Below are positions 3,575-62,218 of a stretch of DNA of 64,000 bases, one piece after another. The position numbers and the translations under genes were made by a program. The notes under the pieces were generated by a model, which had not been told where the DNA came from, did no database searches, and saw only the letters and a list, made by a program, of their open reading frames with translations. Positions within the stretch are counted from its first letter, which is position 1, and every line of letters begins with the position of its first letter. The DNA comes from Laetmonice hystrix (lineage: Eukaryota), in the NCBI GenBank assembly GCA_965235115.1, contig OZ249438.1, forward strand, positions 33,356,001-33,420,000, read 5' to 3'.

Positions 3575-3739
3575 TGCCCATCCAGGCGTACGCCTTCCTG
3601 GGTGCCGTTCTGGCCTTCCTCATCCTGCTAGTCGTGTTTTTCCTCTACCTCAACAAGAAGTTGTGTTTCGCCAACTGTGGAGGGTTTCCATGCGTTGAGA
3701 AACCCACCAAGAAGAAGGAGACAAAGACCAACAAGCTAG
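3575..3739 (+). CDS. Syt14: Synaptotagmin-14/16-like gene, transmembrane-domain exon (internal, phase 1 to phase 1)
   Basis: Acceptor ctgtattttcag|TG and donor CTAG|gtagga. Encodes (V)PIQAYAFLGAVLAFLILLVVFFLYLNKKLCFANCGGFPCVEKPTKKKETKTNKL(G), a hydrophobic helix followed by FLYLNKKLCFxNxGGFP. This matches the human SYT14 juxtamembrane motif FLYINKKFCFENVGGFP as I recall it. The upstream coding exon was not found in the window. Confidence 0.88.
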
Positions 3740-4619
3740 GTAGGAGTTTGAATAGTTTGTCTTCTCGTTCTAAAAACTTCCATGTTCGCATACTGGAAAA
3801 TCTATAAGTGCGTTGAACCTTGAAGCTCTGTATGGTAAATTGAAGTGACTGTTTTTTCGTGAAATATAGGTCTCGCACCACTAAACCTATGAAATTATAG
3901 TAACCGACACCGTTTCTATTGTAGAGTATCAACGCTTCTCTGGTGTGTATCCCTTTTTTAAAGGTTTGGTTACAAGTCACGTACTGTAGTTCACATTTCG
4001 TGATATGACTGATGGTATCGTAACAACAGCACATGTTTAATATATTTATTAATCACTAATTCACTTCATTTTGTACTACAGTGGGTATCCAGAGGCCTAC
4101 AATATACAATACATTGTAGTTCTGTGCCATTATCATGGGCTGGAATAATAACAGTGACTCCTGACAACCTGCCGCAGATACAGACTGATTTCAATATAAC
4201 TGCACTTATTTTACTAAAACATCACCGGTATTTTCAGCAGGCTCCGATGGTCGGCCCATGATTTCTGTATATTTGCCGGGCTCTATAAGTTGTGATATAT
4301 GTGAACAGAGCCTAACGTAAATGATTTAGTAATAATATTGATGTGTACATGTGTATGGGCAGCATTCTTATGATGTTTACGGTGAATTTTGATAACAATA
4401 CTTGGTGGTGTAAGTTTAACTTCTTTAAGTTATACTGAATCTGTCCCAATGTCTGCAATAAGTTCAGTTGAGTTCGTTGACGGAAATACTTGTACCATGA
4501 TATTTATGTCTGGGCAACGTGCCATAATGCTGAAACCTGAATATAAAGTTTGCATCGTAAACTCAGCGACTCTTGGGCAATCGTAAAATCGCACTAGAGA
4601 ACGAACTAAAGTTGACAAG

Positions 4620-4755
4620 CCGGGGTCTGGGTCACAAGTAAAGACAAGTCCATTTCAATTAACTTGAAATCAATATCAACCAAGCAATCAGATTCAAGTC
4701 AACTTGACTCCAAGTTAATTAAAAGTAGCTTGCCTTTGCTTTGACATGGGCTGTG
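4620..4755. mobile_element. Degenerate relative of the 56437 MITE family
   Basis: Shares the motifs caattaacttgaaatcaat and tccaagttaattaaaa with 56437-56558; termini are decayed. Confidence 0.45.
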
Positions 4756-5816
4756 ATCAGTACACAGAATCTGCTGACCGTCATAGTCCGCGGAGAGTCC
4801 ATCTGGAAGTTACCAGTCATATCTTCCAGTCTCCATGGATTTGACGGCACTTTGACTTCTAATTAAGTCAAAGGCTAAGCCACCAACAGTTGCCTGGCAA
4901 CAGATACCAAGGGAACCTGCGTAGCCCCTCCCACTTCCTCCAGAGACTTGTTCATCACTTCTACACTTAACATGAGACTCTTGGGTGTTAGAGTTGGTAG
5001 CGTGACCTCGAGTGAGAGATCACCAGTGTCAAGAGCTATAGATGTTCGTGGCAGAACGACTCTAACTGACACTGAGATCTGCCACGGCCAGTTGCATGAC
5101 TCTCCGTACGTTAATTTCACCATATATTTTCAATGAGAATTTTAACGTACGGAGAGTCATGTAACTGGCCCGGTTTCTCAGTCGTTGGGCAAGTCGCTTG
5201 GCTAACTTGAGCCATTGAGTGAATGAACTGTCCAACTGCCAACAAAAACCCGGGTTAGGCAAGGACGGTGACTATTTGGGGGTCTCAAATGTGACAAAGA
5301 AACCCAGGACCCCGGACACCGGCTCCTCACTCACGACTTACGACTGCTCAACACTCCTCAATACAATATACATATTACACTTAGGACACCACCATTAGCC
5401 TATCACCCATTCCACCCTCACCACAAAAATACTCAGGGAAAAGTAATTCTAGTAATATCCAACTACATACGGTTCAATGGGTTCAACAAATCTTTCATGG
5501 GAATTTTGTGCTAATCCTTCATAACTTAACATTTATCATTTCTAAGTCAGGGCACTGGTGTATGTCTCTCAGAGCTTAAATTTGGGCGTAGGATGTATTA
5601 TTGACAAGACTAATTTGAGAAGAAAGACTTTAATTAGGCTGCCAATTCAGTTTTAGTGTCCTCGTTTCCACTGTGTCTTGTTGAAATCTCATTCAAAAGC
5701 AATTCAGAATCTGCACATTTTGGAATTGGTAGTTAGTTATTCCCAGTTAGAAAGAAAGACCATCCGTTATATTGGGAAGTGAAATATTCATTGCTCTTCA
5801 ATCTACGTTAGGAAAT

Positions 5817-5905
5817 GGTATGCAGGTGTACTGTTGGTATGCAGGTGTACTGTTGGTATGCAGGTGTACTGTTGGTATGCAGGTACTGTTGATATGCAGG
5901 TGTAC
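5817..5905. repeat. 19-bp tandem repeat, ~4.5 copies
   Basis: Unit ggtatgcaggtgtactgtt. Confidence 0.88.
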
Positions 5906-7067
5906 AGTGTTCATCCTGGACACATCTATGTCCACCCCCGGCGCACAAACAAATACATGATCAGTATCTCTCCTCAACGTACATACACCCTGTCACATAC
6001 CTGGCATTTGCATTGCAAAAGCACTCGGGTTTTCCCTTTCTTTGACAGAAAAATATCGTGTCGTCTCATTATTTGATATTAACAGCGTTCATTTTTCCTG
6101 ACTCGTTTCGACTTGCGATGAGAATGTATACATGTGGAGAATAGTGAAGTTGTACGGAAGCTCAAAAGATCCACAATTTTGCTCACAATTTTATGACCGG
6201 GAGTTCCGTATTGAAGGCAATAACAATATATTAAAAACTACATTAGCAAAGTAGTCAGACCATCATGGGTGGGATGGTTTCCTCACCTAATCTGTTCAAT
6301 GCAGTAGGATTTAGTAAGTATCCCGAGCACATGGATATACCCAAACAGTTATCTGAATAAAGTTCGGAAACAACACTTGGGGGGATTTATGTGGACAAGA
6401 AGATTGAGATGATTATCATTGTTATCTGATATCAAAGAGCGTGTGTCACGGCGCACAAGGTGTACACACACACATGTAGAACGGTGCTGAAATCACATGA
6501 CCTATTTCACGTGTAGTTTTCAGATTTCAATGAAGGTTTTAATGTGAAGCACATCAGTGTCCTCTATCCAAACAAGATTTGTTCACAGCATGTTGTCCAG
6601 GGTATCTTGTATACAATCAGTGCAACACACTTGAGTTAATGGTTTACGAGGTGAGGTGACACAAGGGTTCATGCATATCTCTAAGTAGTGGTTTACTTGT
6701 GGTGTTATGCTCTTTAAGGAAAGCAATAATGTTCGGCATGTTCGATGATGTTTTTATCATATCACATCTGAATGACACTGGGGTATGAACGGACAAGAAT
6801 AAGTGAATAGTAAAAACATATTGTTCTAATGAATATTGATATACTCGAATTTTATTTAGTGTAAAAATTCTTACACGTTATGCTTGAATTATTTGATACA
6901 CCATGGTGATGACAGCTAATACCGCTGGTAGTTGTCCTATCCCTATGGTTTATCAGTAAGGCCTAACTAGAATTACGTTAACTATCTCTGAAGGATAAAG
7001 TCGTCTCCTAGCGAGACTTGCAGACTCGATAATATACGATTTCCTCACCATCTACTGTTATCTAACC

Positions 7068-7119
7068 ATGGCAGGCCAAGCAGGACAACCGATAGTCAAG
7101 AAGCATAAACACTACGGAG
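7068..7119 (+). CDS. Candidate alternative first coding exon of the Syt14/16-like gene
   Basis: accATGG start context, stop-free MAGQAGQPIVKKHKHYG, and a perfect donor GAG|GTAAGT in phase 1, compatible with exons 16703 and 42938. An upstream phase-1 acceptor (cttgcag|7024) could instead make it a 96-nt cassette exon. Confidence 0.55.
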
Positions 7120-9415: not shown

Positions 9416-10985
9416 TAAAGGAGCCGTACTGTGAGGCCAGTCAGTGTGGTGTAGTTACACTGGGTTTATGTTTATACCCCTCTCCCACAGTTGGCAGTCG
9501 GACATCCATTCACATAGTAATCGGTCACTGAATAGAAAGCGAGCACTCGCCCTGAGTGCCACTGGTATCGTGTTGGAGAGTGATGGTGATCCTCATCTAA
9601 AGGACTTTATCTTGTTCAAACCGGGAAATACGACAACAACCATTGGCCTCCTTTGGTCTGGAGGTTTGCTATGGTGTTGAGGGTCGTGATCCTAGATCAT
9701 TTGTCTCCGGAGTTTCTATCGCCAGAACACGGTTTAGTAATGGATTTAATTTTGCTTCCCCATACTAACTACAGGTCGTGAATTAGGGTCGCATTGTCCC
9801 GAGGCGGTGTGTTCGTTTCACTGACTCACTGACTGACCAAAACTAAAGGAGAAGTTCTGCAAATTGTCGGGCGGGTTTTGTTCAGGATACCGTGCAGTTT
9901 CCTTGATGCTCTTAACATCGGTGTGTCTTCGGAATACTTATTCCGTATGTTCTTTGCAGTCCTGGTTGTATTTATTTATGATATTTCCTTGATTTGTTTC
10001 CCGCGCTTTATGATGTAAACTTCTCATGGTCTGCCGAATCAGCAGTCGCCCTAGTAATTGTTAAGCAGGAACTTCCACCTGAGCAGCTCAGTATTTAATC
10101 AACAGTTAATCGGCTCTTCTATTGTTGATATCTGAAGTGTATCAGTGTAAATGAGGTAGTGTGCCTATACAGCTTGATCCTAAGTTTACATTTTGCTGCC
10201 ATTAATTAATCAAGATTCCCGACTCATCAAGCCCGCGCTTAATGCTGTGCAAGCGATATGTGATAACGCTTCCTTCTACTCTGTGATTGTAGCCGCAGAC
10301 GGCTTTGTTAATCTCAATGAGGTGGAAGCAGATGGTATCAGCCATGACACTGTCTCCTCAAGTAAGTTTCTCTCCCTCAACTCACTTTTCTCCTCTTCAT
10401 CGCACTAATGATTGCACTGTTCGTTTTTTCTGTGATCACCATTTTACTAACTTGTAGTCAAACCAAATAGTGTGCAGTCAAGGAATTATGATTGAACGTA
10501 GTCTATCGATGTTCAGTAACATGTCCGTACTTCGTCTGTGGACAGTGAAAAAGCTTTTGATATAATGCTTCCTAAGATAGTGCATAATGTGAGAGTTTTG
10601 TTTTCAATGTAGAGTAGTGTGTGCACTTCCTGTAGTATGTGATCGTAAGGTAGAGCGAGAAGTTGAAGCACGTAGCAGTACCATTACAGTGGTTGGGTTT
10701 AGGTGGCTGGGGATGTCTACAGTTTCAAAGATCCCAAACCTGGGCAAGCTGATACTGCTGGCTAGCAAAGGTTGACGACCTTTTCTTACCATACTGAATG
10801 TCGAACGCCCAAGGGAACTTTTTTCAAGGGAAGAGAACGTTGCAGTTACAGTATGACTTTGCCATGGTAACAGGATATCTACAGACAATTATATTACATT
10901 TCTTCTTACGTACAAATGTCGCCAACTTACTTGTGTTCCCCCGAAAGTATACGAAATAAGCACAGTAGGACTTTACTTCTTACAG

Positions 10986-11051
10986 TACATAGTGCGGCAG
11001 ATATTCATGCAGGGATTTTTTTATCTGTGTATTTTGCGAACCCTAGGCAAG
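10986..11051 (+). CDS. Weak candidate symmetric phase-1 cassette exon (or first exon from ATG 10916)
   Basis: Acceptor ctttacttcttacag|, donor AAG|GTAAGC, 66 nt, open frame (V)HSAADIHAGIFLSVYFANPRQ(G). No recognisable homology. Confidence 0.3.
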
Positions 11052-15534: not shown

Positions 15535-15800
15535 CCAAGACGACACCATTCTGGTCTCTCTGGTTGTTTACGGTTCGTTAAACACGAACATAACGATACT
15601 ACTTGTATTTTCCCGAGGCCTTGAACATATTCAATAAATCGATCCATTCACAGGCAGAGTTGTGGACAGGGCTGTGAATTAATTATATTGGTGGTCGCCT
15701 GCTCTAAGCTGTCTCTATTTTTTGAGCTTGTTGCCGAGTTGATGCTTGGATATCGCGAGAGTAGAGAAAGATGATGTAACGGCTAACACGATGTTAGAGC

Positions 15801-21449: not shown

Positions 21450-21569
21450 CTCCAACGGGACTGAACGGAAGCCATGATGAAGCCACATCACCTGGTGTAG
21501 GTGAAGGTCCTCCAACGGGGCTGAACGGAAGCCATGATGAAGCCACATCACCTGGTGTAGGTGAGGGTC
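21450..21569. repeat. 60-bp tandem duplication
   Basis: tccaacggg(a/g)ctgaacggaagccatgatgaagccacatcacctggtgtaggtg occurs twice. Confidence 0.88.
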
Positions 21570-25182: not shown

Positions 25183-26851
25183 AGCTTCGCTAAAGTCACC
25201 TCAGTAATAAAACGTTTTCGTCTTTTGCCTCAGAAGGCTACAACATTTTCACTTTTATGGCTTCTATCGGAGACCTCAGTTTACGTGCCTAAACTCGAAA
25301 ACTAACAATTCACAGTCTGCCCCAAATACGTAGGTTGTGTTCGTCAAAGAGCCTGCACATTTCACACCCTTTTCAGGCATTGCAGACATGAGGGAGAGGG
25401 CAGAGTCCAGGGCAGAAACTTAGAACATAGCCCCAGGTGTTTCCATTCGGAAGGTCATAAATAAGAAACAGATTCTGACAATTATAATGATACGTCAGAA
25501 TCCATGTAATATTAAAGACCTACGAAGGTTTTGTTGATTATATGGGGATGACAGATGTTTTCAGATGTAAATAGTCATAGCACACTAAGGTCTACAGATC
25601 ATCTCATGAATTAGGAATTTTGACAGGGAATATAGACTGTCTCTACTCAAGAAATCCAGCTATTACATGAGGATCTTAATTGAGAGCCATGCAGATGGAG
25701 CAGTGCAACTATGGCGCGATACGTGATGCCATTTTTAGGGGTTCTATATGTTATGATATTCTGGCACATTGTGTGGTTACGGTAGCAGGGCGAAACTCCC
25801 ACGTGTCTTATTGTCATTTTCTGTGCCTGAAGCAATTTGTTGGCACCTGCAGGAAAAATACCTTTCTAAGTGCAAGTCATGTAGTAAGTGGGCCCCCACC
25901 GGAATGCTTGGGTGCAAGGACAATATTGTACTCCATGTTTATTGTTTTGTATGACGTCTGTCCAGATTAGGGTTAACGGTGGGTACAGCTCACACCCTTG
26001 TCCATGTCCTGTTGGCATTACATCTGCCACAGCACGTCGAAGTATGCCGAGTGTGCACAGCCATGTGCAAAACAGGTCAGCTATCGCAATTGCTGTCCCG
26101 CTATTGGCTGTGAAGGCGGTGCTATTATCATGATGGAGCGGCTTGGTTGGCGGCAGGCGGGCGTCCTCTCTCAGCACAGCCGGTGATGGTCGGTGGCGGT
26201 GGTGGTGGTGGTGATGGTCGGTGGTGGTGGTGTGCCAGTGGGGAGGTGCTGTTCTTGTGGACGATGCCGTGTCTCCCCGTCACAACCATAGGTCGGTTGA
26301 CGTGACAGTAGGATCCACCCGCCTGACTGCCCCGGAGGTCTGTTTTACCTCACAGCCAGTGCTTACTCTACTACCGCTATCCCTTCAAACAGCAGAGACA
26401 CACGACTCGTGAAAATACGTGGCAGCATATTCAAAACACGGGCCTGGTAGCAATAGCAAGCAAACCATCAGGAGGACTCCCAGCGGAACGGAGGACAGGA
26501 GAATTCAGTAGGCTGTGGCCAGTCCGCCCTATACAATCAGACCGTTACAACCACTGCTCCGACCCACTGTAGTTACAATGATCGTGAATAACCTCAGTCA
26601 GAGTGAGTCACCGAGAGCCGTGGATCATCTCAGGTGATCGCAGGCAGGTCGTCCTGGATCCACATCATAACGGACGTTTACCGGAGTCCTGTAATGCAGT
26701 GACCAGAACAGCACTCCGCCCCCTTGTAGTGACAGTCACCCCTCAATTAGGGGAGCCTAGCTCCACACAGGATTCTCTTACCCAATCAGGGCATATCTAG
26801 AATCAGAGGCCCTTCTTGCCGGAGGTGCCCCATGGCGAGGCCCCGGACCTC

Positions 26852-27092
26852 ATGGCCCTCCTGAAGTTTCTCTCCAACAAGTGGACATCCACCACCAAGT
26901 CGGGCCCGGGGTGCCTGACCTGGTGCTTCGGGGGCAATGACCGGAGGCCGTCGCGGGATGAGTACCTGGACCCCGGCGATGGCCCTACGAGCCCCCCGCC
27001 TCCCCTGGAGGAGGAGATACCCGTGGCCAAGGAGCCCACCGAGAGCTCCTCCCTGGCCAGCTCCATCCGCAAGGACCATGGGAAAATGAATG
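26852..27092 (+). CDS. Candidate alternative first coding exon lacking a transmembrane domain
   Basis: Abrupt GC3-rich, coding-like island. ATG in ctcATGG context with an in-frame TAG upstream at 26798. Encodes MALLKFLSNKWTSTTKSGPGCLTWCFGGNDRRPSRDEYLDPG...HGKMN(G) and ends at donor ATG|GTATGT in phase 1, matching exon 42938. Confidence 0.7.
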
Positions 27093-27444
27093 GTATGTCA
27101 GTTCCTTATACCGGAAAATCCGCATCTAACATTACTAGACTTTAACGGCCATTCACATAGTCCGTGGGATGTTTAATTTAAATGATAAAATACACCAGGG
27201 ACGATCCTTTAAATTAAAACTCTGGCTGACATCGGACCGACAGTCACCTCAGTGTGTCTGACACTCAACTGACTGTGGGTTTCTGCTCCCATCACCACCC
27301 GAGTTAGTGGTGGTTTGAGGTGCAGCTATGTGCTGGCAGGGCTGTGTTAGGATAGAGAGTCTGCACCATTGCAGTGTTTTTTTCTATCATTGATGTATAC
27401 CTGCCGTATTCCGAATGCTCACATAACAAACAGCAGGGATGTAC

Positions 27445-27830
27445 CATAGGCGCCAGAAGCGGGGGGGCACGGGGGGCGACCGCCCCCTCAATAATCTGGT
27501 TGGGGGGGCATCGCCCCCCCAATAATCTGTGATCATGAATGAAAAAAAAGGCAGGTTTTTCCACATACAGTAGGCCTGTTGAAACCATGACTTGGGTGCG
27601 TCAAAGACTGGGTCGATTGTCCTAATGATACATTGTAATTTATTCATTTACGCCTTCAAAACATAAAAAATCCTGCCTCAAAATGGCGTAGAAAAGCGTT
27701 TTAAGGTGTGTAGTTTTTAAAATTTTCTTGGGGAGGGCCTCCGATCCTGCTTTACTAAGCATGTTGTAGCCTATGACTTTCGCTTCAGCTCTCTTGCCCC
27801 CCCAATAATAATTTGCTTCCGGCGCCCCTG
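27445..27830. mobile_element. MITE-like element
   Basis: Imperfect termini CATAGGCGCCAGAAGC / GCTTCCGGCGCCCCTG with internal G/C runs; no TSD seen. Confidence 0.5.
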
Positions 27831-28371
27831 GAGGGGCTAGCTGTTTGTACAGAATCTCTGGGTCGGTCCCGTATGTCATGCCAGCATGTCCCGAGCTGAT
27901 TACAATAAGCGGCATACCGCCGTACATCCAATTGTCCAGGTTAGCACGTATGTGTGTTTGTTAATCTATATTGATTTTTGCACCGAGTCAAGCAGGCAGA
28001 ATGATGTGGACGGGCCTCGGAGAACACATCTTGGGTGTTGTATGATAAACGTGTTTCACAAGGAGTTCAGTCATTATCAAGATTGTTAGTATCTTTAAGT
28101 CCACCAGTGGGCAGAACTGTGCGGATACTGGAGGAATACCTTGAGGATGTTTATCCTCCCAAGATATTACGGTGCCTCATTCCAGGCTACGTAGGTAAGG
28201 ACCACGTTAGTGAGGTCCTGAAGGTGGTCATGCATGAACTCCAGTCCTTTGCATTATGCTCGGGAAGGAGTCGTGGTTTAAACTATCTACACTGGATTGA
28301 AACCAGTCCGGGTCATCAGTAAGGACGTAAAGGTGTAGCGCCGAGAGGACCGATGTGCCGTGGATGTAGGG

Positions 28372-30329: not shown

Positions 30330-31385
30330 TCAATGGGGGGGGGGGGGGGGGTGCACGTATTAGTTACTAAGTTAGATAATGCAGGTCTCTGCTGGCAGTG
30401 TTCTGGTACCCTTACCACTCCCTGAAATGAAGGACGATCGTGGACTGCTCAGTTGACGGGACTACATCAGCCATGTCGATATCATGACCAGGCCTGCGGT
30501 GCGTTCTCACCATGAGCCAAGACTGTTGGCAACAACAATATTGCCAGATATCATATACAAACACTCCTTTTTATGTACAGGGTAGTCTGTTTAAGTCTGT
30601 TCCATGAAATGGTAATCGTTTCAAGCGAGGGCAAGTAAGAAATTAGAATGCCGGCGCAAGTGTATGTGGATTATCGGATGTAGGTCCGTTCATCAGGATA
30701 TCATCATCATCATGGATATCCAAGTGGTAGTATCGAACACCGAATTGATTTGTACATTATCATAGAATTTGGTATGTTGTTGAGTGTATGTTCAGTGCAG
30801 ACCGAGACACCTGATGGCAGAGGATGGTATTCTGAGTAAAGGGTCAATAGGTAATCATGGTCTGCCCGCACCTGGTGGTATACAGTTTGTCCGTGGCATC
30901 TTGCCATTGGTTTCAGTGAGCTCAGGTGTACATAGTGTGGGGGTGGATGTGTTCCTCATTACACGGCACTCATTCCATGTCGTTTTTTATTGTTGTTCTT
31001 TAATATGGACTGGCACGACCTCAGTCGTGATTTCACATTCTGTAACAGTGACACCCCAGTTTTACCAGTTCGTGCAGTATACCAGTCTGTGAAGGGATGG
31101 GCCGGCAGTAGGGGTACAGACGAGGTCACATACTGAAGTTTTAATTTTTATTGTTGACTCTGTATCCGTTTTCTTGCCATAGTGTCCATGTACTATTCTG
31201 GCTCAGTGCCTCTTTAGATGAGAGGGCCAGAGACTTTGTATCCGCGTGTCGTGTTATTTGGTGGAGATTCAGAAAGACTGGTGGCCGCTGTCCAAAATGT
31301 CAAATGTCTCACGTGCAGCCATGTCGCAGCTACCGGTGAACCAGCAGAGACAGTCTCTCTGTCAGGTGGAGTCAGGTGAAACTGT

Positions 31386-31788
31386 CGTTTTCATGATTGG
31401 GCAAACACCTCAGACTATTCGCACTGTCTGCCCCTGTGATTCTGGCTCGTTTTCATGATTGGCAGGTTGGGCAAACACCTCAGACTATTCGCACTGTCTG
31501 CCCCTGTGATTCTGGCTCGTTTTCATGATTGGCAGGTTGGGCAAACACCTCAGACTATTCGCACTGTCTGCCCCTGTGTTTCTGGCTCGTTTTCATGATT
31601 GGCAGGTTGGGCAAACACCTCAGACTATTCGCACTGTCTGCCCCTGTGTTTCTGGCTCGTTTTCATGATTGGCAGGTTGGGCAAACACCTCAGACTATTC
31701 GCACTGTCTGCCCCTGTGTTTCTGGCTCGTTTTCATGATTGGCAGGTTGGGCAAACACCTCAGACTATTCGCACTGTCCGCCCCTGTG
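31386..31788. repeat. 70-bp tandem repeat, ~5.5 copies
   Basis: Unit cgttttcatgattggcaggttgggcaaacacctcagactattcgcactgtctgcccctgtgtttctggct. Confidence 0.93.
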
Positions 31789-31874
31789 TCCTGTGTTTCT
31801 GGCTATCTCTGACGAGGAGTAGTGGCCTGCCATGAGGTGTGTCTCGTCGCCTTCATCACCAACTCGTGTCAGGC

Positions 31875-31967
31875 GCTCTCCATCCCGACGTCTGGTCGGG
31901 ATGGAGAGCCATCCCCACGTCTGGTCGGGATGGAGAGCCATCCCAACGTCTGGTCGGGATGGAGAGC
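31875..31967. repeat. 29-bp tandem repeat with an inverted 5' arm
   Basis: cgtctggtcgggatggagagc occurs three times, preceded by the reverse-complement arm gctctccatcccgac. Confidence 0.8.
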
Positions 31968-32082
31968 GTTAGAAGTGCCGGGGCCGGCGATCAAGGGTCT
32001 CATATGACGTAATCCTTCGGCAGCTTGAAATGGAGGACGTCGCGATGGTGTTGGATCCTGACAGCCTCAGGTTGGCGGCGGC

Positions 32083-32244
32083 GGCAGTGGTGGTGGGGTG
32101 GGGGACCCGCATATATCTGAACCCAAATGATGGCCACCTGATGTAGGGACCTACCCTATGGATGGCAGTGGTGGTGGGGTGGGGGACCCGCATATATCTG
32201 AACCCAAATGATGGCCACCTGATGTAGGGACCTACCCTATGGAT
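32083..32244. repeat. 81-bp tandem duplication
   Basis: ggcagtggtggtggggtgggggacccgc...cctaccctatggat occurs twice. Confidence 0.88.
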
Positions 32245-33848
32245 TGAGTGTGTAAGAATGAACTGGCCCAGGTTATATCAGGACATATAACTGTCTGTAT
32301 ACGTTCACTATAATACTGTATGTGACATTGGGATGGCGAGTATAAGGTGTCGGCATGGTGGAGAACGTGATGTTATCTGGTTACATAGAAATGGGTAGGA
32401 AAGCGTGACGGAGGGTGATCGGTTATTTAGTGAAAAAGTGAAAGCTTGGGACAAATGTTAGATTGTAAGTGAGGAGGTCGACCGGCGAGGGAGGCTCTAT
32501 CGTCAAACTGTCTCGACACCTCGGGTGTCTTCACCACCACTGGGGTAATGGAGACAGGTGAAGACGTTCAGCTTGGGAAACCATTTACATCTTATAGACC
32601 TCAGTACCAACAGAACCTGATTGGTATAGGCCTGACGTATCGAGGCTTGAATTCCGAAGGGGAGGCGCAGGACTTATTGAAAACTTACATAATGGAGGGG
32701 GGCGCAGAACGTATCGAAAACTTACATATGGAGGGGGGGGGGGGGGTTAAGCAATTCCCCGGAAATTGGAAATCTGTAGGACTACCTGGTAATTCATGTT
32801 TTGAAGAAAGTTTTTTTTTGTTAAAAATAATATTACAACTTTGAGATGGGATGCCTCAATACCCTCTGCTACACGTACATCCCCAACGTAAGGTAATCGG
32901 TCATGGTGACGGTATGTTGTCAGGCTTCCAACATACCAACCGCCTCCGTAGGCGAGAGATGTAGTAGGCCCTATACACGGTGTGGGACATCCGCCAGTAT
33001 CTGCTTGTATTGTATAAAGGGAACACTACATCCTGACATATTGTGTCTCTTAGGGTAGGGAGGGAGACAGCCGGCTTGGGTACTGAACCGAGAAAGTTAG
33101 GTACATACTTGGAATACATACTTGGTAATTAAACAGATTGTATCGTCTCAGAGCGTTTCTGTTTTCTTTTGAAAATCCAGTCGTCCCCGTTGATACAGGA
33201 TGTGGGAGTTAAATTATTATCGTGTATAGAAATAGACAGAGTGATATTCTTTTGTCGATGTTTCAAAAAGATGATGTGAAAAGTGTTTCACATATCTTTA
33301 GTCAGTGCTCTGTCGTATATTTGTTGTCAGTATTATGGCCATCATTCTAATTTCTATGGTGAAGTTTCATGTCGGCTAGCTTGACTAAAAATTGTTCCTG
33401 GTTTTTCTATAGTCGAAAGGCCAAATTGACAGAGTTTCGAGATGGTTGAGTAAATACAGGTGCTATTACCGTCTCCAGTCTCCGAGGTGTCCTTTTTAAA
33501 AATATACGCAACTGGAGCATGACTGGGAACGGTCAGAGACCTGCTTTCCTAGTCACGCACGGGTCGTGCGGTATAAACTGGGTTTCAGGATCTACACTCT
33601 AGGTTAAAGTGAAACCTGAAGTTTGGCCTCGATATAAACTACGTTCGCCTCGTGAGGTCATGGGTTGCTGATGTATGGGTTAACCACTTCAGTGACGGGG
33701 AGAAGGGTCGCCCCATCTTTGAGAAAGAAAGGAGGCAGGGTTCAAATTTCATCTGTACGCAGATAACGGATTGTCCCATTCTCTAGTCGAGAGAAAGATT
33801 TGCAATGATAAGCTATATGGAATGAGTTGGCATATTTCCCGATTTCAA

Positions 33849-34078
33849 CCTCTTCTACACGAACAAGTTTTCCTTGACGAATTTCCTTGACGACTGAGAT
33901 GTGCCCGTGTAGATTACCACCAAGTCGTCACCGCCCATGGCCAAGTTTCCTCGTTCAAACGTTAGCACAGGTTCCAGCTTTCCAACGAGTGGGAATTGAC
34001 GAGCAAAAGTTGTCACTTTTTCCTTTCTACACAGGTACTTTTTCCTCGTCAAGGAATACTTGCCCGTGTAGAAGGGGC
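33849..34078. mobile_element. MITE with ~30-bp imperfect TIRs
   Basis: cttctacacgaacaagttttccttgacga is inverted at tcgtcaaggaatacttgcccgtgtagaag. Confidence 0.6.
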
Positions 34079-35162
34079 TTTAGCCTGATGTGTGTGTGAT
34101 GTACGGAGAAAACTTGGCCCACGACTCCCACCAGGCTACAACAATAAGAACACTTCTTACATAGGCCAAAATTATAATAGGTCCTGTCAACATTCGGCCG
34201 ACCCAGCAACGACTCGTGCCGACTCTTGCCGACTCGTGCCGAGCCTATAGATAACAAACAGTGACGGACAAGTCATCTCCGACCAAAATATAAAAAAGGG
34301 GAAAAAACAACAAACAAATATAATATGCCGTTTGACATTATATTGACATAGGTCTACTTTGTGTAGGGATTCTTTTAATAGGAAGGTGGGGTGTGCAATT
34401 TAAAGTAGCGCCGTTTTTGGGTAAGGAAATAGGGATAGGACTGTTAGTTTGTCTATAGGGTATTGTGCTGATGAAAAGAACCAGCCAACCACACCGCGGC
34501 CCCTGTTGTGTACGCTATACATAGAGTGTCGTGGGTCGGGGTTGTCTGTGAATAGACCTACCATTGCACACACGGCCTGTGGCGGTCGTGGCCGCAGAAG
34601 TCGGATCCCTCCACGCTTACCCGTATAAATACACTCTTTTTTAAACTTTTGTTCAAGAGCGGACATTTTTTGAGTTGTAACGTTTGGATAGAGTCTGGGA
34701 TATGATTCCTGAAACATGTATGCCCTGAGGAGCGCCTCCCTCCAGAGTTTGCAGGCTACCTAGAACAAAGTCTGTCCTATTTTAGGCATGTTTGCTGTTT
34801 GCCTTCACCGCTTTTGGTACTGAATAAGAACTGGACTGGGTTATTGCCCTCGGAGTGCCCTCGAGACAAGAGCCACTGTACATTTCTTGGTAAACGACCG
34901 AGCGAATCGACAGATGTTTAAGGGACGGCTCTCAAAGCGCTGCAAGTGCGTGTTCCTGAGACCTGAGTTTACAAAACCACACAACACATCAGTACCAAGT
35001 GGTCGAGTGAGGTCATACTCTGTGGTGATAACGTTATGACGTTATGACCACGGCATCGGACAGCTGGCTTTACAAAATAGATGGAGTCAGGCAAATGTTC
35101 AAGTCGTATTTTACAAATACAATGTAGATACGAGGTTGCACTTAATTGCATGAAAACCGGTT

Positions 35163-35661
35163 GAATTGCACATGCAATGGTCCTCTGAGAGAGGGACTGG
35201 TGTGTGTAAATCAGCGAGAATTGCACATGCAATGGTCCTCTGAGAGAGGGACTGGTGTGTGTAAATCAGCGAGAATTGCACATGCAGTGGTCCTCTGAGA
35301 GAGGGACTGGTGTGTGTAAATCAGCGAGAATTGCACATGCAGTGGTCCTCTGAGAGAGGGACTGGTGTGTGTAAATCAGCGAGAATTGCACATGCAGCGG
35401 TCCTCTGAGAGAGGGACTGGTGTGTGTAAATCAGCGAGAATTGCACATGCAGTGGTCCTCTGAGAGAGGGACTGGTGTGTGTAAATCAGCGAGAATTGCA
35501 CATGCAGTGGGCTCTGAGAGAGGGACTGGTGTGTGTAAATCAGCGAGAATTGCACATGCAGTGGTCCTCTGAGAGAGGGACTGGTGTGTGTAAATCAGCG
35601 AGAATTGCACATGCAGTGGTCCTCTGAGAGAGGGACTGGTGTGTGTAAATCAGCGAGAATT
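35163..35661. repeat. 55-bp minisatellite, ~9 copies
   Basis: Unit gaattgcacatgcagtggtcctctgagagagggactggtgtgtgtaaatcagcga. Confidence 0.95.
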
Positions 35662-36059
35662 TACCGGGTGTTATAGAGGTGTGGAGGCGGGATATTTCGC
35701 AGGCGATCAAGCATGTCCTCGGACAGGTTTACAAACGATCAATAACTGACCGTCTTTCACCTCCTCCGGCCATCTGACCACGGCCATTTCCACGCCGGCT
35801 ATTGATCCCAGCGTGACTACTCCCGACCTTTGCTGATAGCCCTTCTTTATAACCCGCGACCTCCGCCAATATGTTCCTTGCCAGTCCTGACAGCTTCCCT
35901 TCCACAAGTCGGATGATTTCCCTGGGTAATGGAATGGTTGGGTTTCTCTATATATTGGTCAGATTGCATGGGATCAGCCACTGTTTATCAGCAATCATTC
36001 TGAAAGGGAATGTCATATTGAATGTTGACAAATTCTGCATGAAATATGAGGGGGCATGA

Positions 36060-36109
36060 ATGTAGGGGACTCGACAATGTAGGGGACTCGACAATGTAGG
36101 GGACTCGAC
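36060..36109. repeat. 17-bp tandem repeat, 3 copies
   Basis: Unit atgtaggggactcgaca. Confidence 0.85.
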
Positions 36110-37472
36110 TGTGAAAATGTAACCCACAATACTGCCCACTGATCGGTTTTTGTACTACCGATAATTTCATCGTTAACGCAGAGGATGAGGTAACTTAGAT
36201 ATCTTTTTCTGATTAAATTTAAGAGAGCTTAATGAATTACATTGCTACTAAAAGGTGTCGGATGTCTTTATTAGCTCCTGCTGCATGTCAGCCAGTATAA
36301 AAAGGTAGGTTAGAAAAACATATACGACAAACTGGACAAAGCGGAAACGCTATGACGCACAGCATTGAAATTCATCAGGTGATCAAAGGCGTGTAACTAG
36401 CAATCTCAAAAATATTGTTGTGTCTTTACAAGGCCCCTCTTCATTTTCAGTCAACAACAAAATAGAATGTGCATAGCGTTCCTGCTGCATACTGTACACG
36501 ATGCGAATCGACGGGCACTGACTGGGGACTGTCCTAGTGATATGGGGCTCGAGTAGGTCAGTAATGAGGGCTTGGAACGGAAGATGAATGGACCTTGTAC
36601 AGGGTACAGTCAGGGCAGGGTCCCTCAGGGTGATTGAGACACTCCCAACCCTACATGACTTGTGATGTGGGGGTGGAAGCCCTAGTTAAAACACGGGATC
36701 GGGGTGATTAACATTGGACCTTAGCGTGACTGATCACCATCTCGGTGACCTTTAGGTCAGGCGATCACATGACCTTGACGTAGAGAATCCAGGTCCAGCG
36801 CTTGGTGAGGGGGTCATTGGGCGACCTTGTTGTGTAGAGACTGACATTGGTCATGATAGATCAGGGGTGTGTGTAACCATGGTAATAACGTCATACCCTA
36901 TTGTGGGAATCTATGGGCGGGTAGGGATGTAAGTCGATCCCATTGTGTCCGATATCACCAGTAGATGATTGCTCAATTACGTCCGTATCGAAGGTCATCA
37001 GATTTGTAGTGTTGTAACCATAACCCGGAACTCTCCCTCAACATTCCAGCAGGTACCAATGCAGTGCTACATTTCATGAGATGGACGCTTCCTGACTGCA
37101 GTGGAAATAAATTGTAGAGGCGTAGAACCAAACTTGTATCCCGATAACTATAGGCTAGATAGTTTATGCAAGCTATATAGGCGCCATATCCCCTAATACT
37201 GATATAGACCAGAAGGTTGATCAATCGCAGAGATGTTCGGTAAGTGGGCTGAGATAAGTCCCTGTTGTGTAAATACGAAGTAGCAAAGCTCTGTCACGCG
37301 GCCGTAGTCGTACTAATGGCTAAAGTGAGAAGTTTCTAGCCCATACCACGTCAGTGAGTCAGGCGTTAAAAAGTCGGTCACATTATGAGGCTACCAGGCA
37401 CAAATTCCACATACCTGCCATACTTTACAGTGATAGACCTGTACAGAAAAGGGGAAGGAACTGCTAACCCAG

Positions 37473-37593
37473 GTGTAACGATTTCAAGTGACCCCTCATT
37501 CCAGCCCCCCCCCCCCCCGGGAACTTGAAACCCTTTTCAAGCTCGGGGGTAGGGGGGGGGACTTAAATGAGGGGGAACTTGAAATCGTTATAC
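37473..37593. mobile_element. Small palindromic MITE with poly-C/poly-G arms
   Basis: Perfect 14-bp TIR TAACGATTTCAAGT / ACTTGAAATCGTTA. Confidence 0.6.
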
Positions 37594-38311
37594 GTGAACC
37601 AAGACGTCAGACAGTCCATTCATTGTGTTCCCGGAGTCTGTACCATATTCAATTGTCACCATTCGTTCAGCACCTTGATGTCGACATATTATGTGCTCAG
37701 TATAGGAATGACTCCCTGCTATATTAGTAGCGTAGCAGATGTTGTTCTGGGGGGGGGGGGGTCAATTTCCGTAATGTGATTAATTTTACGACTTTAATTT
37801 CCATACCGTTCCCCGCGACCTATATAGGAAGTCTCTGCGGCATGGTGACCTCTATATATACCGAGACAGTTCAGAGTCATTACCGCGTGGAAGAGGATCC
37901 ACATTGCACATTGACTACAGTGATCAAATTAATTTAAAAAATCACTGGACCAATACGATTGACACCATCAGTGTGAGAATATTTTAATGTATTAACATAT
38001 GTTTCTGTATGTAAGGCTTAAAGATGTTCAGAACCGAATGACTTTTTCTTTTATTTTTTTGAATTAAAAAAGAAAATCTGTTTATTTAAGCTATTAAAGT
38101 CTGTTATAGAAAACGCCAGTATAATGTTCGTTATAGACCCCCAGAATCCTTGGAATGAGGTCAATGCGGGGATGATACTGACGTATTTCCTAGCAGACTT
38201 GTGACCCTCTCTAATCCGACAGGGGGTGTCTAAACCACCCGGATCGTGCTCCCTCTGTGACTGGCAGTGTCTCCAGGTGTGAGGGCCTCCACTGAGACAA
38301 GAACTGAGGTC

Positions 38312-38325
38312 GTTGTCATGGTAAC
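38312..38325. promoter_or_regulatory. Candidate RFX X-box
   Basis: GTTGTCATGGTAAC fits the X-box consensus GTYNYYATRGNAAC. Motif match only. Confidence 0.4.
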
Positions 38326-39094
38326 GATTGATCAACAGATGTGACACAGGTGTGACTTCAAGTGTGAATATAGTGCGCTGTGACCCTGGAGTCGCGTCCA
38401 GTGGGCCGGGTGGACCGTTTCCCGTACTGCCGGCCTAACGGCTTGTGACAGCCGGACGGTACACTGTATTATATAACAAGGGCGGATAGCATGGGCATGT
38501 ACCGTCCGTTTTAACAAAGAGTGCCGCTTCCTCAGCCAAGTAACTGTTACTAGAGTTTCGTCCATTACGGCGGCTTATGGTTCGATGGTATGATAGTATG
38601 GTGGCTTGGCGGTAGATTATGTTAGCAGGAGTCTATTATTGTCTATTCTCTCTCCTTGGATGGATGCTGGGATCTTCTCTGTAGAGTAAAACAGATCAAT
38701 ATATTGGCATGTCATATTACGGAATCATATTATCTTAGATGTTTTTCTCTCAGTTTGTTTTCTCATGACTGGCTGGTCAGATATCAAGAGATGCAGGACA
38801 TGAGTTCAGGTACATCGAGGTCTTTTTCTTGTATCGCTCGTGAGCCACAATACTGTGAGAACGAAATGCTTTGCTTTTGAAAGGTTTATAAACTTTGTTA
38901 AATTTATTAAGTTTTTTTTATAGTCCTTTAAGTTTATCGGAAGGAGAAATGGTGAAAGCAGGAGTAGGTCTATGGTGTACATCAACAGAAACCATATCTC
39001 CAATATTCATCAAATGGTAACATTCACGAGCCTTTGTCAAGTCGTCATCGATCGTGGTTCAGTTCAGGAATGTGAAGGAGTTTGTTGTAGGTTT

Positions 39095-39953
39095 ACAGAT
39101 CATTGACATATAGGCGCTCGGTCGTAATCTGCTCAGATTAACGTTGACAGAAACCTGGTGTTAACAGATCATTGACATAGGCGCTCGGTCGTAATCTGCT
39201 CAGATTAACGTTGACAGAAACCTGGTGTTAACAGATCATTGACATAGGCGCTCGGTCGTAATCTGCTCAGATTAACGTTGACAGAAACCTGGTGTTAACA
39301 GATCATTGACATAGGCGCTCGGTCGTAAGCTGCTCAGATTAACGTTGACAAAAACCTGGTGTTAACAGATCATTGACATAGGCGCTCGGTCGTAATCTGC
39401 TCAGATTAACGTTGACAGAAACCTGGTGTTAACAGATCATTGACATAGGCGCTCGGTCGTAATCTGCTCAGATTAACGTTGACAGAAACCTGGTGTTAAC
39501 AGATCATTGACATAGGCGCTCGGTCGTAATCTGCTCAGATTAACGTTGACAAAAACCTGGTGTTAACAGATCATTGACATAGGCGCTCGGTCGTAATCTG
39601 CTTAGATTAACGTTGACAAAAACCTGGTGTTAACAGATCATTGACATAGGCGCTCGGTCGTAATCTGCTCAGATTAACGTTGACAAAAACCTGGTGTTAA
39701 CAGATCATTGACATAGGCGCTCGGTCGTAATCTGCTCAGATTAACGTTGACAAAAACCTGGTGTTAACAGATCATTGACATAGGCGCTCGGTCGTAATCT
39801 GCTTAGATTAACGTTGACAAAAACCTGGTGTTAACAGATCATTGACATAGGCGCTCGGTCGTAATCTGCTCAGATTAACGTTGACAAAAACCTGGTGTTA
39901 ACAGATCATTGACATAGGCGCTCGGTCGTAATCTGCTCAGATTAACGTTGACA
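39095..39953. repeat. 67-bp minisatellite, ~13 copies
   Basis: Unit ttaacagatcattgacataggcgctcggtcgtaatctgctcagattaacgttgaca(g/a)aaacctggtg. Confidence 0.96.
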
Positions 39954-40688
39954 CCTGAGTTGTGGGGAGAAACCTGGTCAGGCTTAACGGCCTGTTGTCC
40001 TGGTGCCGTAGAAATATTTGATGAAGCCGTAAAAAATCGGTTGTTTCCGCACGCTGGCCTGGCCTGACCTCAGGGATGAGAAGGACAAGGTGGTCGTTTA
40101 TGACCGCCAAGCTCGGGTGTAGGACGGTGGATGACGGTCAGGCTGGGAGATGGCCTCTGTGGACTGTCACTGACAACCAAACTAATAGCGACGTCCTCAT
40201 GTTTATGTTATAATCAATGTCGTTGCCACTCAGTGTTTGTGAGTTCCGACCGTAACAAGCATGGTCTTTGAGTGCCGTGCTTTCATGGATGCCATTCATT
40301 GCTCCGTCGGCACGGATACCGCGCAGTGTTGGCGCTCGGCGATAGTAACGGAGTTTTTCTGACGATAGTAGTATATAGGGAAGGTGGTTTTCACACAGTC
40401 GTTGTCTTATAAATCTCCAGACGGCACTACATAAACATAGCTTTGCAACACTGTGAACGAGTGAGTTCTGGAACGTGTCTAATCATTAACACTACCAAAT
40501 ACTCGGTACATGTATGTGTGTGCCACGCTTGCAGCTTTGACACCAAGGTTCAGCACGATTACGTTCATCTTTCAAACACCGCCCAAAACTGATAAAAGGT
40601 GGTCCTGAATGTATTCATCATAGTCAAGTCTCAGGCCTACCCGCTAAATATGACGCCAACAGTTTATTTCCTGTACAGTATATGGAGT

Positions 40689-40773
40689 GGATACTACAAG
40701 GTTACAGATCTAAAGGTGACAGTTTGGACGGATACTACAAGGTTACAGATCTAAAGGTGACAGTTTGGACGGA
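40689..40773. repeat. 41-bp tandem duplication
   Basis: ggatactacaaggttacagatctaaaggtgacagtttggac occurs twice. Confidence 0.88.
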
Positions 40774-40844
40774 GTGATATGTTTTTATCGTACGTGCCTG
40801 TAATAAAGGCCGTCCAGTTTACTGGTACACTGGTCCCAGCTATA

Positions 40845-40858
40845 GTTTCCATAGTAAC
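40845..40858. promoter_or_regulatory. Candidate RFX X-box
   Basis: GTTTCCATAGTAAC fits the X-box consensus and lies just upstream of a coding-like island. Motif match only. Confidence 0.45.
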
Positions 40859-42048
40859 CACTGCCCCGCGTCATGTAATTACCTCATGCAACATTCCGTC
40901 CCCAGGGGGCGCGGCGGTCCTTCCTGGACAGATGCGATGTGGGATGCCATATTCCCCGTCCTTTATATCTAATTTCCTTGGGAACTGGGTATATACAGAG
41001 GATATCGAGGATCAGCGCGGCGGTGGCTCCCCCTGGAGGCGGTATAGCTGCGATAACTACAGACGTTCAATGAATGACGTAGAGTTTGTGTATGAAGACG
41101 AGGAATGGTGCGAATTAAGGCCGGTTGGCGTGTGACATGTTGTGGTCCCACCATGGAGTGGTTAGAATTCTCTATGACCACAGATTACATTGGTTTGGGT
41201 ATTGTTGGAACTGTTGATTAACGAGTATCATCACACTGCAAGCTTGTATTAGCCATGTATCTCAAAGGAGCAGCGGGATATAGAGGCTCGCTGAATTTTG
41301 GAAAAACGCAGAACTAAATAATGTAGGGTCACCGAGCGGTAAAGAACGCTCATTTGTCATCGTATACACCAGGCGCCAGTTATAGAAGCATGATGAAAAT
41401 GTATTCAGTGGATCTGAAAAATGCATTAAACTTTTAGACTTAGCGTTTTTTATTGACAGATGGTTTGACAAATACCTGTCCTGTAAGTGCCTGAAACCTC
41501 GTGAAATGTGGAAATTTTACCAGGTATAAAATGGTTGAAATGAATTATTGTAGATAAAGACCAGCATGGCTATGATGTGTGCACAGACCTTGATTCATCA
41601 AGTCTAACCGAATGAAGGCTCTGTATGATTGAGTTTGTCCAACTCTGTTTGGCACTCCGAGAGCAAATTATACAAAGGTATTCATACAAAATGCATGGAT
41701 GCTACAATCAAAACGTCTCTATTTGACATACTTCAGTCATAGCTGGGCCCCGCGTTGTGTGTTAGTACGAAGAGAAATGCAAACATAGACAACATTATCT
41801 TTTGACTGTAGACAATATCATATATTGTATCACTGACTTACAACATTATCTTGTCTGAAGTACACCATCTGCAATATAGCCGTCCCTTCCCTTGGTGCTA
41901 GGAAAGATTGTTGGACTGGCTCAACCCGATTTTAGATCTTTCTAATGGGAATGATGAATCACACCGTGAGATTTCAGTTAAACCGTCAGATGGAAAAAAA
42001 TACTGGAATTGAATTGATCATTACTGAACGTCGACAGTCCAGACGTAC

Positions 42049-42127
42049 GGCACTCAGCATTGTCAACCGGCACTCGGCATTGTCAACCGGCACTCGGCAT
42101 TGTCAGCCGGCACTCGGCATTGTCAGC
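42049..42127. repeat. 20-bp tandem repeat, ~4 copies
   Basis: Unit cggcactcggcattgtcaac. Confidence 0.85.
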
Positions 42128-42240
42128 TGGGGAAACCTGTTATGAAATATTATATAGTAAATATTTAACAGCATTCGTATTTTTGTGATACAGCGGCCAC
42201 ATGTGAATGAAATAATGGCTGTGGATGATGAAGGATTAAG

Positions 42241-42606
42241 AATATACAGGCCTACAATATCTTAAATAGGGATTTGATTTGAATATACAGGCCTACAATA
42301 TCTTAAATAGGAATTTGATTTGAATATACAGGCCTACAATATCTTAAATAGGGATTTGATTTGAATATACAGGCCTACAATATTTTAAATAGGGATTTGA
42401 TTTGAATATACAGGCCTACAATATCTTAAATAGGGATTTGATTTGAATATACAGGCCTACAATATCTTAAATAGGGATTTGATTTGAATATACAGGCCTA
42501 CAATATCTTAAATAGGGATTTGCTTTGAATATACAGGCCTACAATATCTTAAATAGGGATTTGATTTGAATATACAGGCCTACAATATCTTAAATAGGGA
42601 TTTGAT
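42241..42606. repeat. 41-bp minisatellite, ~9 copies
   Basis: Unit gaatatacaggcctacaatatcttaaatagggatttgattt. Confidence 0.95.
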
Positions 42607-42937
42607 GGTTTAGAAATAAGTTGAAATCTTTGACGAGCGGATACTCAGGTTTCTCTTTCAGTAATTCCTATTGGACCAGGTGACAACTAGTACATGTCCA
42701 CAGGGACGGTTCACAAGGACAGGTGGAAAGGTTGAAGGTAACACGAGACTGGAGGCATGATAATACATTTGTCCCGGACATGTCAATTAGTTCCTTTCAC
42801 CCAGACTATAGTCTTAATCAGACCTCACACCAGGGCGGTTTTGAAGGCGGTTCCGCAGGGTTCCAAACTGTGTTGACCGTAGAAAGATCGTTAAAGTTGT
42901 ATAATAAATGTAACGGGAATGTTTTCTATGTTTGCAG

Positions 42938-43096
42938 GCAGTGCGTACGCTTACGATGACGCGGACACGTCGAGTGATAGCGATGATGAGGTATTGCGGC
43001 GGTACCAGCAGACCATGGACATGCAGCGGGTACCCAGTAAACACAGTATCCGCAGTCAGAGGTCTGTCAAGTCATCCGTATCCAAGGCTTCCAAAG
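42938..43096 (+). CDS. Syt14: Syt14/16-like common linker exon (SSDSDDEVL motif)
   Basis: tttgcag|GC acceptor and AAAG|gttagc donor, phase 1-1. (G)SAYAYDDADTSSDSDDEVLRRYQQTMDMQR... resembles SYT14 SSSESEDEALGKY and SYT16 TSSDSDEEVIKQF as recalled. Confidence 0.88.
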
Positions 43097-62207: not shown

Positions 62208-62218
62208 ACCAGCCTGTC

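Follow-up and report, generated by a model that had tools for sequence, protein, structure and literature searches.

Evidence for a transmembrane and a transmembrane-less first coding exon in the single Syt14/16-type gene of Laetmonice hystrix

Results

Our analysis of a 64,000-nucleotide stretch of the Laetmonice hystrix genome (the window) indicates that the only Syt14/16-type gene of this animal, which encodes a poorly understood, calcium-independent synaptotagmin, very probably initiates translation in no fewer than two alternative first coding exons that exclude each other and end in phase 1: a conserved exon encoding a transmembrane (TM) segment and a TM-less exon that we refer to as exon B. 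In the proposed arrangement, the upstream exon would supply a conserved single-pass TM anchor and exon B, located 23 kb downstream of it, would supply an 80-residue TM-less head containing two cysteines. Either first exon would then be joined to a common acidic exon at 42938, followed by two linker exons and by the C2A and C2B exons past the end of the window, and the predicted products would have 540 aa with the TM segment and 560 aa without it. The exons concerned are as follows, with positions counted from the first letter of the window and a slash marking the exon boundary.

3559..3739 (or 3575..3739), + strand: TM-anchor first coding exon (MPVFSVPIQAYAFLGAV...LNKKLCFANCGGFPC...KL, then G), donor GT at 3740, phase 1
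7068..7119, + strand: candidate exon A (MAGQAGQPIVKKHKHYG), ATG, 17 codons plus 1 base, donor GAG/GTAAGT, phase 1
26789..27092, + strand: exon B, alternative first coding exon, coding sequence 26852-27092 (80 codons plus 1 base), donor ATG/GTATGT (GT at 27093), phase 1
42938..43096, + strand: common acidic exon (G-SAYAYDDADTSSDSDDEVLRRYQ...), entered and left in phase 1, acceptor for exon B
51977..52167, + strand: linker exon E3 (…QLMSMAEQG…), phase 1 in, phase 0 out
53133..53282, + strand: linker exon E4, 50 codons, acidic, phase 0 in and out

The window carries the 5' part of a single Syt14/16 orthologue

The window covers the 5' two-thirds of the gene. Pfam C2 matches locate the C2A and C2B domains 5-8 kb past its end, and on the C2A and C2B exons they define tandem C2 domains at the C-terminus of the gene product. 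The second C2A exon, the linker and the C2B exons share 79-95% identity with named Syt14/16 proteins, and nemertean proteins match the C2A-C2B part of the product at about 80% identity. A search of the Laetmonice genome with the C2B exon recovered one high-identity locus, with the runner-up at 36%. In a midpoint-rooted tree built without an outgroup, vertebrate SYT14 and SYT16 form one clade with a support of 100 and the Laetmonice gene lies outside this clade, among spiralian sequences and beside nemertean ones. Together, these comparisons place the gene, at the level of sequence, as the pre-duplication invertebrate 'Syt16' orthologue of the Synaptotagmin-14/16 group, and they bear out the first-pass annotation of this DNA, which had anticipated a single orthologue.

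Our reading of the sequence also located the TM exon, exon A and exon B at the coordinates proposed in that annotation, each of them ending in phase 1. The accompanying claim that all three are compatible with the common exon at 42938 holds as well, as the frame remains open to the stop codon in each spliced model (540 aa with the TM exon, 497 aa with exon A and 560 aa with exon B). Among the linker exons, E3 resembles a Lineus exon that contains LISLAEKG (E about 1e-5 to 2e-6), and for E4 the prediction draws solely on splice sites and reading frame. The outcome is a gene model for an unannotated genome that includes one alternative first exon with RNA backing.

Conservation of the TM exon and the common exon

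An N-terminal TM segment, an adjacent LNKKLCF..GGFPC juxtamembrane motif and a following acidic TSSDSDDEVL exon are all present in the gene. The TM exon has a hydropathy maximum of 2.99 and is 55-73% identical to the TM region of Syt14/16 proteins from many phyla; the common exon is 44-69% identical to the homologous motif exon and has a counterpart with identical phases in Lineus. Judged by these alignments, both exons are conserved across phyla. If the TM exon is contiguous, its start would be an in-frame ATG at 3559; the alternative entry is a conserved phase-1 acceptor at 3574/3575, and in Lineus the homologous exon is entered through a phase-1 acceptor at this codon. Phase compatibility and conservation together suggest that the TM exon is used in Laetmonice and is joined to the common exon.

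The sequence immediately before this exon is repetitive.

3265..3576, + strand: 77-bp tandem repeat, 4.1 copies (TRF: period 77, 93% matches)

The repeat stops precisely where the TM exon begins, and its unit contains, in every copy, an ATG with five codons and an acceptor-like 'ttttcag' motif.

Candidate exon A is probably not a true exon

The first-pass annotation had interpreted the phase-1 exons of the 39-kb intron as a bank of interchangeable first exons. Its coordinates and phases are correct, but the pattern alone amounts to no more than chance: when we searched the intron for ORFs that begin with ATG, comprise 10 codons or more and run to a phase-1 GT donor with a score of at least 6, we obtained 23 ATG/donor combinations at 14 distinct donors, and the donor of one ORF in the same intron (10916-11051) matches that of exon A in strength. 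Use of the TM exon, exon A and exon B alike, which would make the locus a genuine bank of at least three exchangeable N-termini, would fit the perfect donor of exon A (GAG/GTAAGT, score 11.7, in the right phase), the short TM-less heads of 7-20 residues annotated in Saccoglossus, Octopus and Blattella, and the presence of at least five different N-terminal exons in Lineus. We nevertheless consider such a bank unlikely. Besides the number of qualifying donors, the 17 residues of exon A have no similarity to the N-termini of homologues, its GC3 of 0.50 is uninformative, and in the annotated Lineus isoforms the TM and Cys exons have no short exon between them. Exon A is thus probably not a true exon.

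Exon B is spliced to the common exon

Evidence for the use of exon B comes from run X4, which represents one sample of low depth (about 5) whose library type is not on record and whose RNA nature we infer. Within 25190-28365, X4 covers only segments of exon B, besides one high-copy repeat: its contigs on the exon span 26789-26938 and 26998-27093, and its depth is 3-5 on exon B and zero on the unique flanks. Three DNA-like runs cover the same interval without a break. Past 27093, X4 contig 26 continues with 28 letters identical to 42939-42966, the start of the common exon, so that the junction is supported by one contig of 124 letters at a depth of 5.6. For exon B, the earlier proposal that an alternative ATG exon is joined in frame to 42938 is confirmed by this 27092 to 42938 junction in an RNA-like contig, and exon B is a genuine alternative first coding exon spliced to the common exon. 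The 5' end of the X4 contig, at 26789, lies 63 nt before the ATG and directly behind a possible 'cag' acceptor, and the Lineus counterpart of exon B has 'cgcag' 9 nt before its ATG. A further non-coding exon upstream of exon B is possible, and exon B probably has a promoter of its own.

If exon B were spliced in as a non-coding or poorly translated leader, translation would start at the ATG of the common exon (ACC ATG G, about 43012) and would produce a truncated, anchorless protein. This interpretation draws on the GC-richness of the exon B region, in which two frames of the opposite strand are open too, on the weak similarity of exon B to the TM-less heads of other species, and on an upstream ORF that overlaps its start.

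26832..26864, + strand: upstream ORF of 10 codons, out of frame, overlapping the exon B start codon (read from sequence)

This ORF could lower translation from 26852. However, GC content at codon positions 1, 2 and 3 of exon B is 0.54, 0.56 and 0.87, respectively, and the elevated third position occurs precisely in the frame that runs on into the common exon. Furthermore, exon B contains only two polymorphisms (26926 and 26935), both of which are synonymous third-position changes, while the flanks vary freely. In Lineus, the positional counterpart is annotated as coding and has the same phase-1 donor, and a local alignment of the Physella head with exon B was matched or outscored by only 1 of 5000 shuffles. 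Given these observations, a leader role seems improbable to us and we favor exon B as a translated first exon. An artefactual origin of the junction contig, as an assembly chimera or as the trace of a cDNA or retrocopy in a DNA library, with only the TM form being made, is less probable still, because although the library type is not on record and the contig is single, short and shallow, the join coincides exactly with a GT donor on one side and, 15.8 kb away, an AG acceptor on the other and preserves the frame, the exon depth relative to the empty flanks is far above the expectation for a DNA library at X4's repeat-to-unique ratio, and the assembly contains no retrocopy. In a search of the animal's own genome, exon B and the common exon each matched at a single place; exon B is therefore no repeat, and a retrocopy is unlikely.

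Vertebrate and invertebrate relatives also combine TM and TM-less forms

The annotation had assumed that vertebrates divide the two protein types between SYT14, with a TM domain, and SYT16, without one. This is incorrect, as each paralogue has both forms: RefSeq lists TM-bearing SYT16 isoforms for lungfish, sharks, frogs, whales and bats, and TM-less heads occur in goose SYT14 and in Tasmanian devil and Xenopus SYT16. Craxton 2010 (PMC2823689) likewise includes TM-bearing and TM-less vertebrate Syt16 as well as a human SYT14 that lacks the TM segment. Since both vertebrate paralogues have both forms, there was no clean subfunctionalisation; the two-headed design is older than the vertebrate duplication and was retained by both copies. 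These data correct the textbook-style simplification that SYT14 is just the TM form and SYT16 just the TM-less form. Vertebrate SYT14 and SYT16 resemble the Laetmonice gene in having forms with and without a homologous TM exon, but their TM-less heads are about 180-300 aa long and belong to another sequence family (MAFFKSFQQNLPS..., ..FFQPLSSWMSR..) to which exon B has no similarity.

The idea that the locus represents an undescribed system must also be given up, given that TM-less invertebrate variants were published in 2010 and that 14 RefSeq isoforms of Lineus longissimus follow the same exon logic. Craxton 2010 reports transcript-supported TM-less N-terminal variants from Ciona savignyi, C. 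intestinalis and Strongylocentrotus purpuratus (PMC2823689). These invertebrate Syt16 variants fall in the same orthology group, that of the gene from which the vertebrate Syt14/Syt16 pair arose, but they come from other phyla than Laetmonice, and neither a cysteine motif nor the exon order is described in the accessible text of the source (PMC2823689). In Lineus, isoforms X1-X14 (XP_064624057-071) derive from one gene (genome record OU342994.1, our locus L018), whose corresponding exons are all phase 1.

38863-39024: Lineus TM exon
48733-48891: Lineus Cys exon
82723-82872: Lineus common exon

As in Laetmonice, a TM exon is followed by a TM-less, Cys-bearing first exon and then by the common 'GSAYAYD-TSSDSDDE' exon, with phase-1 junctions throughout. 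The heads differ in that the Lineus exon has an adjacent CC (LFCCLGS) where exon B has C-x3-C, and their sequence similarity is not significant (p 0.07). Lineus additionally has extra 5' exons that lead into its TM exon and, behind the common exon, a third head (MGNLEGK...), neither of which was found in the Laetmonice window and its 20-kb flanks. Mollusc isoforms annotated as 'synaptotagmin-16-like', such as those of Physella acuta (X2), Crassostrea and Biomphalaria, start with a head of 70-100 aa that lacks a TM segment and is joined to the same acidic exon. These heads begin with MF[SR]KKL and, near residue 20, contain a Cys cluster, after which come a basic, a Ser and an acidic stretch. 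The shared position and layout suggest that exon B is homologous to the mollusc heads, with most pairwise sequence tests being not significant.

A cysteine motif in the exon B head

The head encoded by exon B consists of 80 residues and contains Cys21 and Cys25 within GCLTWCFGG, with no adjacent CC. A search with this peptide against a large protein collection, in which only proteins of 44-140 aa were eligible, returned no candidate and carries little weight. A profile of 19 Cys-type heads from molluscs and nemerteans, run against all 2568 ORFs in the 104-kb region, reported 213 hits, among which exon B came 156th, and profiles of vertebrate TM-less heads ranked it 853rd and 1477th. The best match to a vertebrate-head profile ('AFFQGFQ', E 0.06) lies 11 kb upstream of the window in an ORF that has no ATG, and its score is at chance level. 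In tblastn searches with the first 110 aa of homologues and with the Lineus heads against the window and its 20-kb flanks, only the TM exon, the common exon and E3 matched; hits about 4 kb upstream correspond to a GGDRP simple repeat. An amphipathic helix at the N-terminus of exon B was considered and rejected, as the hydrophobic moment is only 0.2-0.4.

The exon B head lacks a TM segment, in agreement with the first-pass annotation, but its designation as anchorless is uncertain because the cysteines in exon B and its counterparts could be lipid-modified. The TM-less form may be lipid-anchored instead. A broader and rather doubtful conjecture is that the spiralian TM-less heads of molluscs, nemerteans and Laetmonice carry a Cys pair or cluster at about residues 20-25 that would be S-acylated, such that promoter choice would select between a permanent TM anchor and a reversible lipid anchor. 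Neither the accessible text of Craxton 2010 (PMC2823689) nor the open-access literature that we searched contains a description of such a switch for the Syt14/16 family. The recurring Cys motif in TM-less heads, which suggests this switch, is the sole element of the locus that may merit further work.

An intronic retrotransposon ahead of the C2A exon

The 3' part of the window is occupied by a mobile element that has no part in the function of the Syt14/16 gene.

56666..64000, - strand: LTR retrotransposon, located in the intron that precedes the C2A exon; its second LTR reaches 64829, past the window

Its 948-bp LTRs are 100% identical, and it encodes a protease, RT, RNase H, gag and a zinc knuckle.

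Gene model and first exons

The window is part of a 627-Mb invertebrate genome and carries, on the plus strand, the 5' part of a synaptotagmin-14/16 (Syt14/16)-type gene, whose identifying C2 domains lie outside it, with Pfam C2 matches 5-8 kb past the window end. The gene model rests on homology, on splice sites and on the reading frame, and takes in the flanks of the window; positions above 64000 continue the window's numbering past its end.

Model of the Syt14/16 gene
First exon, +: membrane-anchor (TM) exon (3559 or 3575 to 3739) or exon B (coding part 26852-27092)
42938-43096, +: common exon, acidic
51977-52167, +: linker exon E3
53133-53282, +: linker exon E4
69164-69443 and 70042-70199, +: C2A exons, past window end
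70534-70723 and 71115-71327, +: linker and C2B exons, past window end
71595-71695, +: last exon, past window end

Each of three first exons leaves the frame open as far as the stop codon, giving 540 residues with the TM exon, 560 with exon B and 497 with a further candidate, exon A (7068-7119). All three were found in the sequence where the first-pass annotation had placed them, each ending in phase 1.

The last base of the TM exon is 3739, with its donor GT at 3740, and its product (MPVFSVPIQAYAFLGAVLAFLILLVVFFLYLNKKLCFANCGGFPC...) is 55-73% identical to the Syt14/16 TM region in molluscs, annelids, nemerteans, arthropods and vertebrates. Where the exon begins is ambiguous. A contiguous start would use the in-frame ATG at 3559, preceded by a stop codon at 3541-3543, and in many homologues the N-terminus is only a few residues away from the TM segment; a spliced entry would use 'ttttcag/TG' at 3574/3575, the same codon as the phase-1 acceptor of the Lineus longissimus TM exon, which receives several upstream exons. 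Either reading leaves the finding unchanged. A 77-bp tandem repeat (3265-3576, 4.1 copies, 93% alike) has an end that coincides exactly with the TM exon. Its units copy the ATG, first five codons and 'ttttcag' motif of that exon, each upstream copy is readable as a short ORF (MPVFSVIFY..stop) or a decoy acceptor, and the repeat could influence how the TM form is spliced or translated.

Exon B is transcribed and spliced to the common exon

A search of sequencing runs with exon B returned four matches, all from one sample and each with its library type unrecorded, which we mapped over 25190-28365, an interval chosen to stay clear of the flanking minisatellites. Three runs, whose contigs total 518-600 Mb, give even coverage of this whole interval and behave as genomic DNA. 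In the fourth, X4, with contigs totaling 58 Mb, depth there is zero save at 26789-26938, 26998-27093 and a high-copy repeat at 27416-27839. X4 contig 26 reaches 27093 and then continues into CAGTGCGTACGCTTACGATGACGCGGAC, which is letter-for-letter the common exon from 42939; donor 27092/27093 is thus joined to acceptor 42937/42938, the splice predicted in the first-pass annotation. Exon B depth in X4 is 3-5, at least 10 times the expectation for a DNA library at X4's repeat depth, and because of this excess and the exact GT-AG join we treat the run as RNA. A genome search found no second copy of either exon B or the common exon, so the join is not attributable to a retrocopy.

In the frame assigned to it, exon B has the look of coding sequence as well: GC content is 0.54 at first, 0.56 at second and 0.87 at third codon positions, and only two variants fall within the exon, 26926 C>T (Cys25) and 26935 C>G (Gly28), both synonymous, with many variants in its flanks. 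Exon B is real, on the basis of one sample, low depth and one short junction contig. At its 5' end the contig stops at 26789, directly after a possible acceptor. A ten-codon upstream ORF (26832-26864, ccATGG context) overlaps the start codon out of frame and may limit how much of the TM-less form is translated.

Phase-1 donors arise by chance in the same intron

We scanned the 39-kb intron for ORFs that start with ATG, span 10 codons or more and run into a phase-1 GT donor with a score of 6 or higher. This yielded 23 ORF/donor combinations at 14 distinct donors, so the phase-1 pattern alone is no evidence for first exons; one of those found, 10916-11051, has a donor equal in strength to that of exon A. 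Nothing supports exon A except this pattern, which chance also yields, and its 17 residues match no homologue compared. Because short TM-less heads are annotated in other species we allow it a slim chance of being a real exon.

Membrane-anchored and TM-less forms in related genes

The first-pass annotation had proposed a single gene with a bank of interchangeable N-termini, a candidate for an undescribed system and a possible ancestral state before the vertebrate split. Its observation is borne out in part, the core standing for exon B and the evolutionary account and claim of novelty falling away. Syt14 and Syt16 form one group with invertebrate 'Syt16' as the parental gene, vertebrate Syt16 occurs both with and without a TM domain, and human SYT14 has TM-less forms too (Craxton 2010, PMC2823689). 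Our protein searches agree: a homologous TM region begins RefSeq SYT16 isoforms of lungfish, paddlefish, sharks, frogs, gecko, whales and bat, long TM-less heads occur in goose SYT14, Tasmanian devil SYT16 and Xenopus SYT16, and many molluscs have predicted proteins of both kinds, '14-like' (TM) and '16-like' (TM-less).

The clearest parallel is Lineus longissimus, in which 14 RefSeq isoforms with consecutive accession numbers, some named '14-like' and others '16-like', lie on one contig.

Lineus exons (coordinates in locus L018, OU342994.1)
21429-21593 and 29784-29810: two upstream first exons
38863-39024: TM exon
48733-48891: first exon MAVYGRHQ...LFCCLGS...
82723-82872: common exon
91058-91342: third kind of head (MGNLEGK...)

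All junctions read in this 5' part are phase 1. The order of TM exon, cysteine-bearing first exon and common exon is that of the window, so that in position exon B corresponds to an already annotated first exon of a related phylum. The MGNLEGK head is encoded after the common exon, which its isoform skips; Gly at position 2 is a possible myristoylation site, and no counterpart of this head was found in the window.

A C2B exon query found one high-identity locus genome-wide, the next best being 36% identical. In a quick maximum-likelihood C2A-C2B tree (40 sequences, midpoint rooting, no outgroup), vertebrate SYT14 and SYT16 form one clade with support 100 and every invertebrate gene falls outside it. 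The window's gene adjoins two nemerteans, one transcriptome protein and the annelid Owenia; its identity to the other sequences peaks at 81%, with Tubulanus.

Exon B may share a layout with other TM-less heads

Homology in sequence between exon B and other TM-less heads is at most weakly suggested. When the region's ORFs were scored with profiles of mollusc/nemertean or vertebrate heads, exon B did not outrank the rest. In local alignments against shuffled controls, p was 0.0002 for the Physella head, about 0.01-0.04 for Biomphalaria, Pinctada, Tubulanus and Patella, and 0.07 for Lineus, with the other eight species not significant. The layout that they appear to share is a head some 50-100 residues long in which cysteines lie in a hydrophobic patch around residue 20-25, then a basic, Ser, acidic stretch (RRPSRDE in exon B, KRRSSDE in Physella) and a phase-1 donor leading to the 'G-SAYAYD' exon.

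Promoter or first-exon choice is the best reading of the Syt14/16 N-termini; one choice would give a type-I membrane-spanning protein and the other a TM-less form, with identical acidic linker and C2 domains in both. By 19-residue hydropathy exon B has no hydrophobic segment (maximum -0.25 vs 2.99 for the TM form). Cysteine clusters bear palmitate in other TM-less C2 proteins, and the two exon B cysteines are candidate palmitate sites.

Repeats and neighboring gene

The introns are full of long minisatellites with periods of 41-137 bp and as many as 38 copies (23414-25182, 28371-30330, 45391-48006, 53686-54621 and others), several of which hold long open frames by chance and thereby inflate ORF lists of the window. 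The element at 27416-27839 (about 400 bp) is very high-copy: the three runs that behave as DNA show it at 500-1000x the depth of unique sequence, and X4 contains it too. The intron that precedes the C2A exon holds a minus-strand LTR retrotransposon, which takes up 56666-64000 of the window and ends past it at 64829; the 100% identity of its two LTRs (948 bp each) indicates a very recent insertion, and its open frames encode 934 aa (protease, RT, RNase H) and 536 aa (gag, zinc knuckle). Past the window's 3' end, a further plus-strand gene (window-relative about 79500-82350) starts ~8 kb downstream of the stop codon of the Syt14/16 gene, with exons rich in charged residues (…EEKKQQLEL…, …RLTNGQALTQTFHAKEQLAAVRLYIE…).
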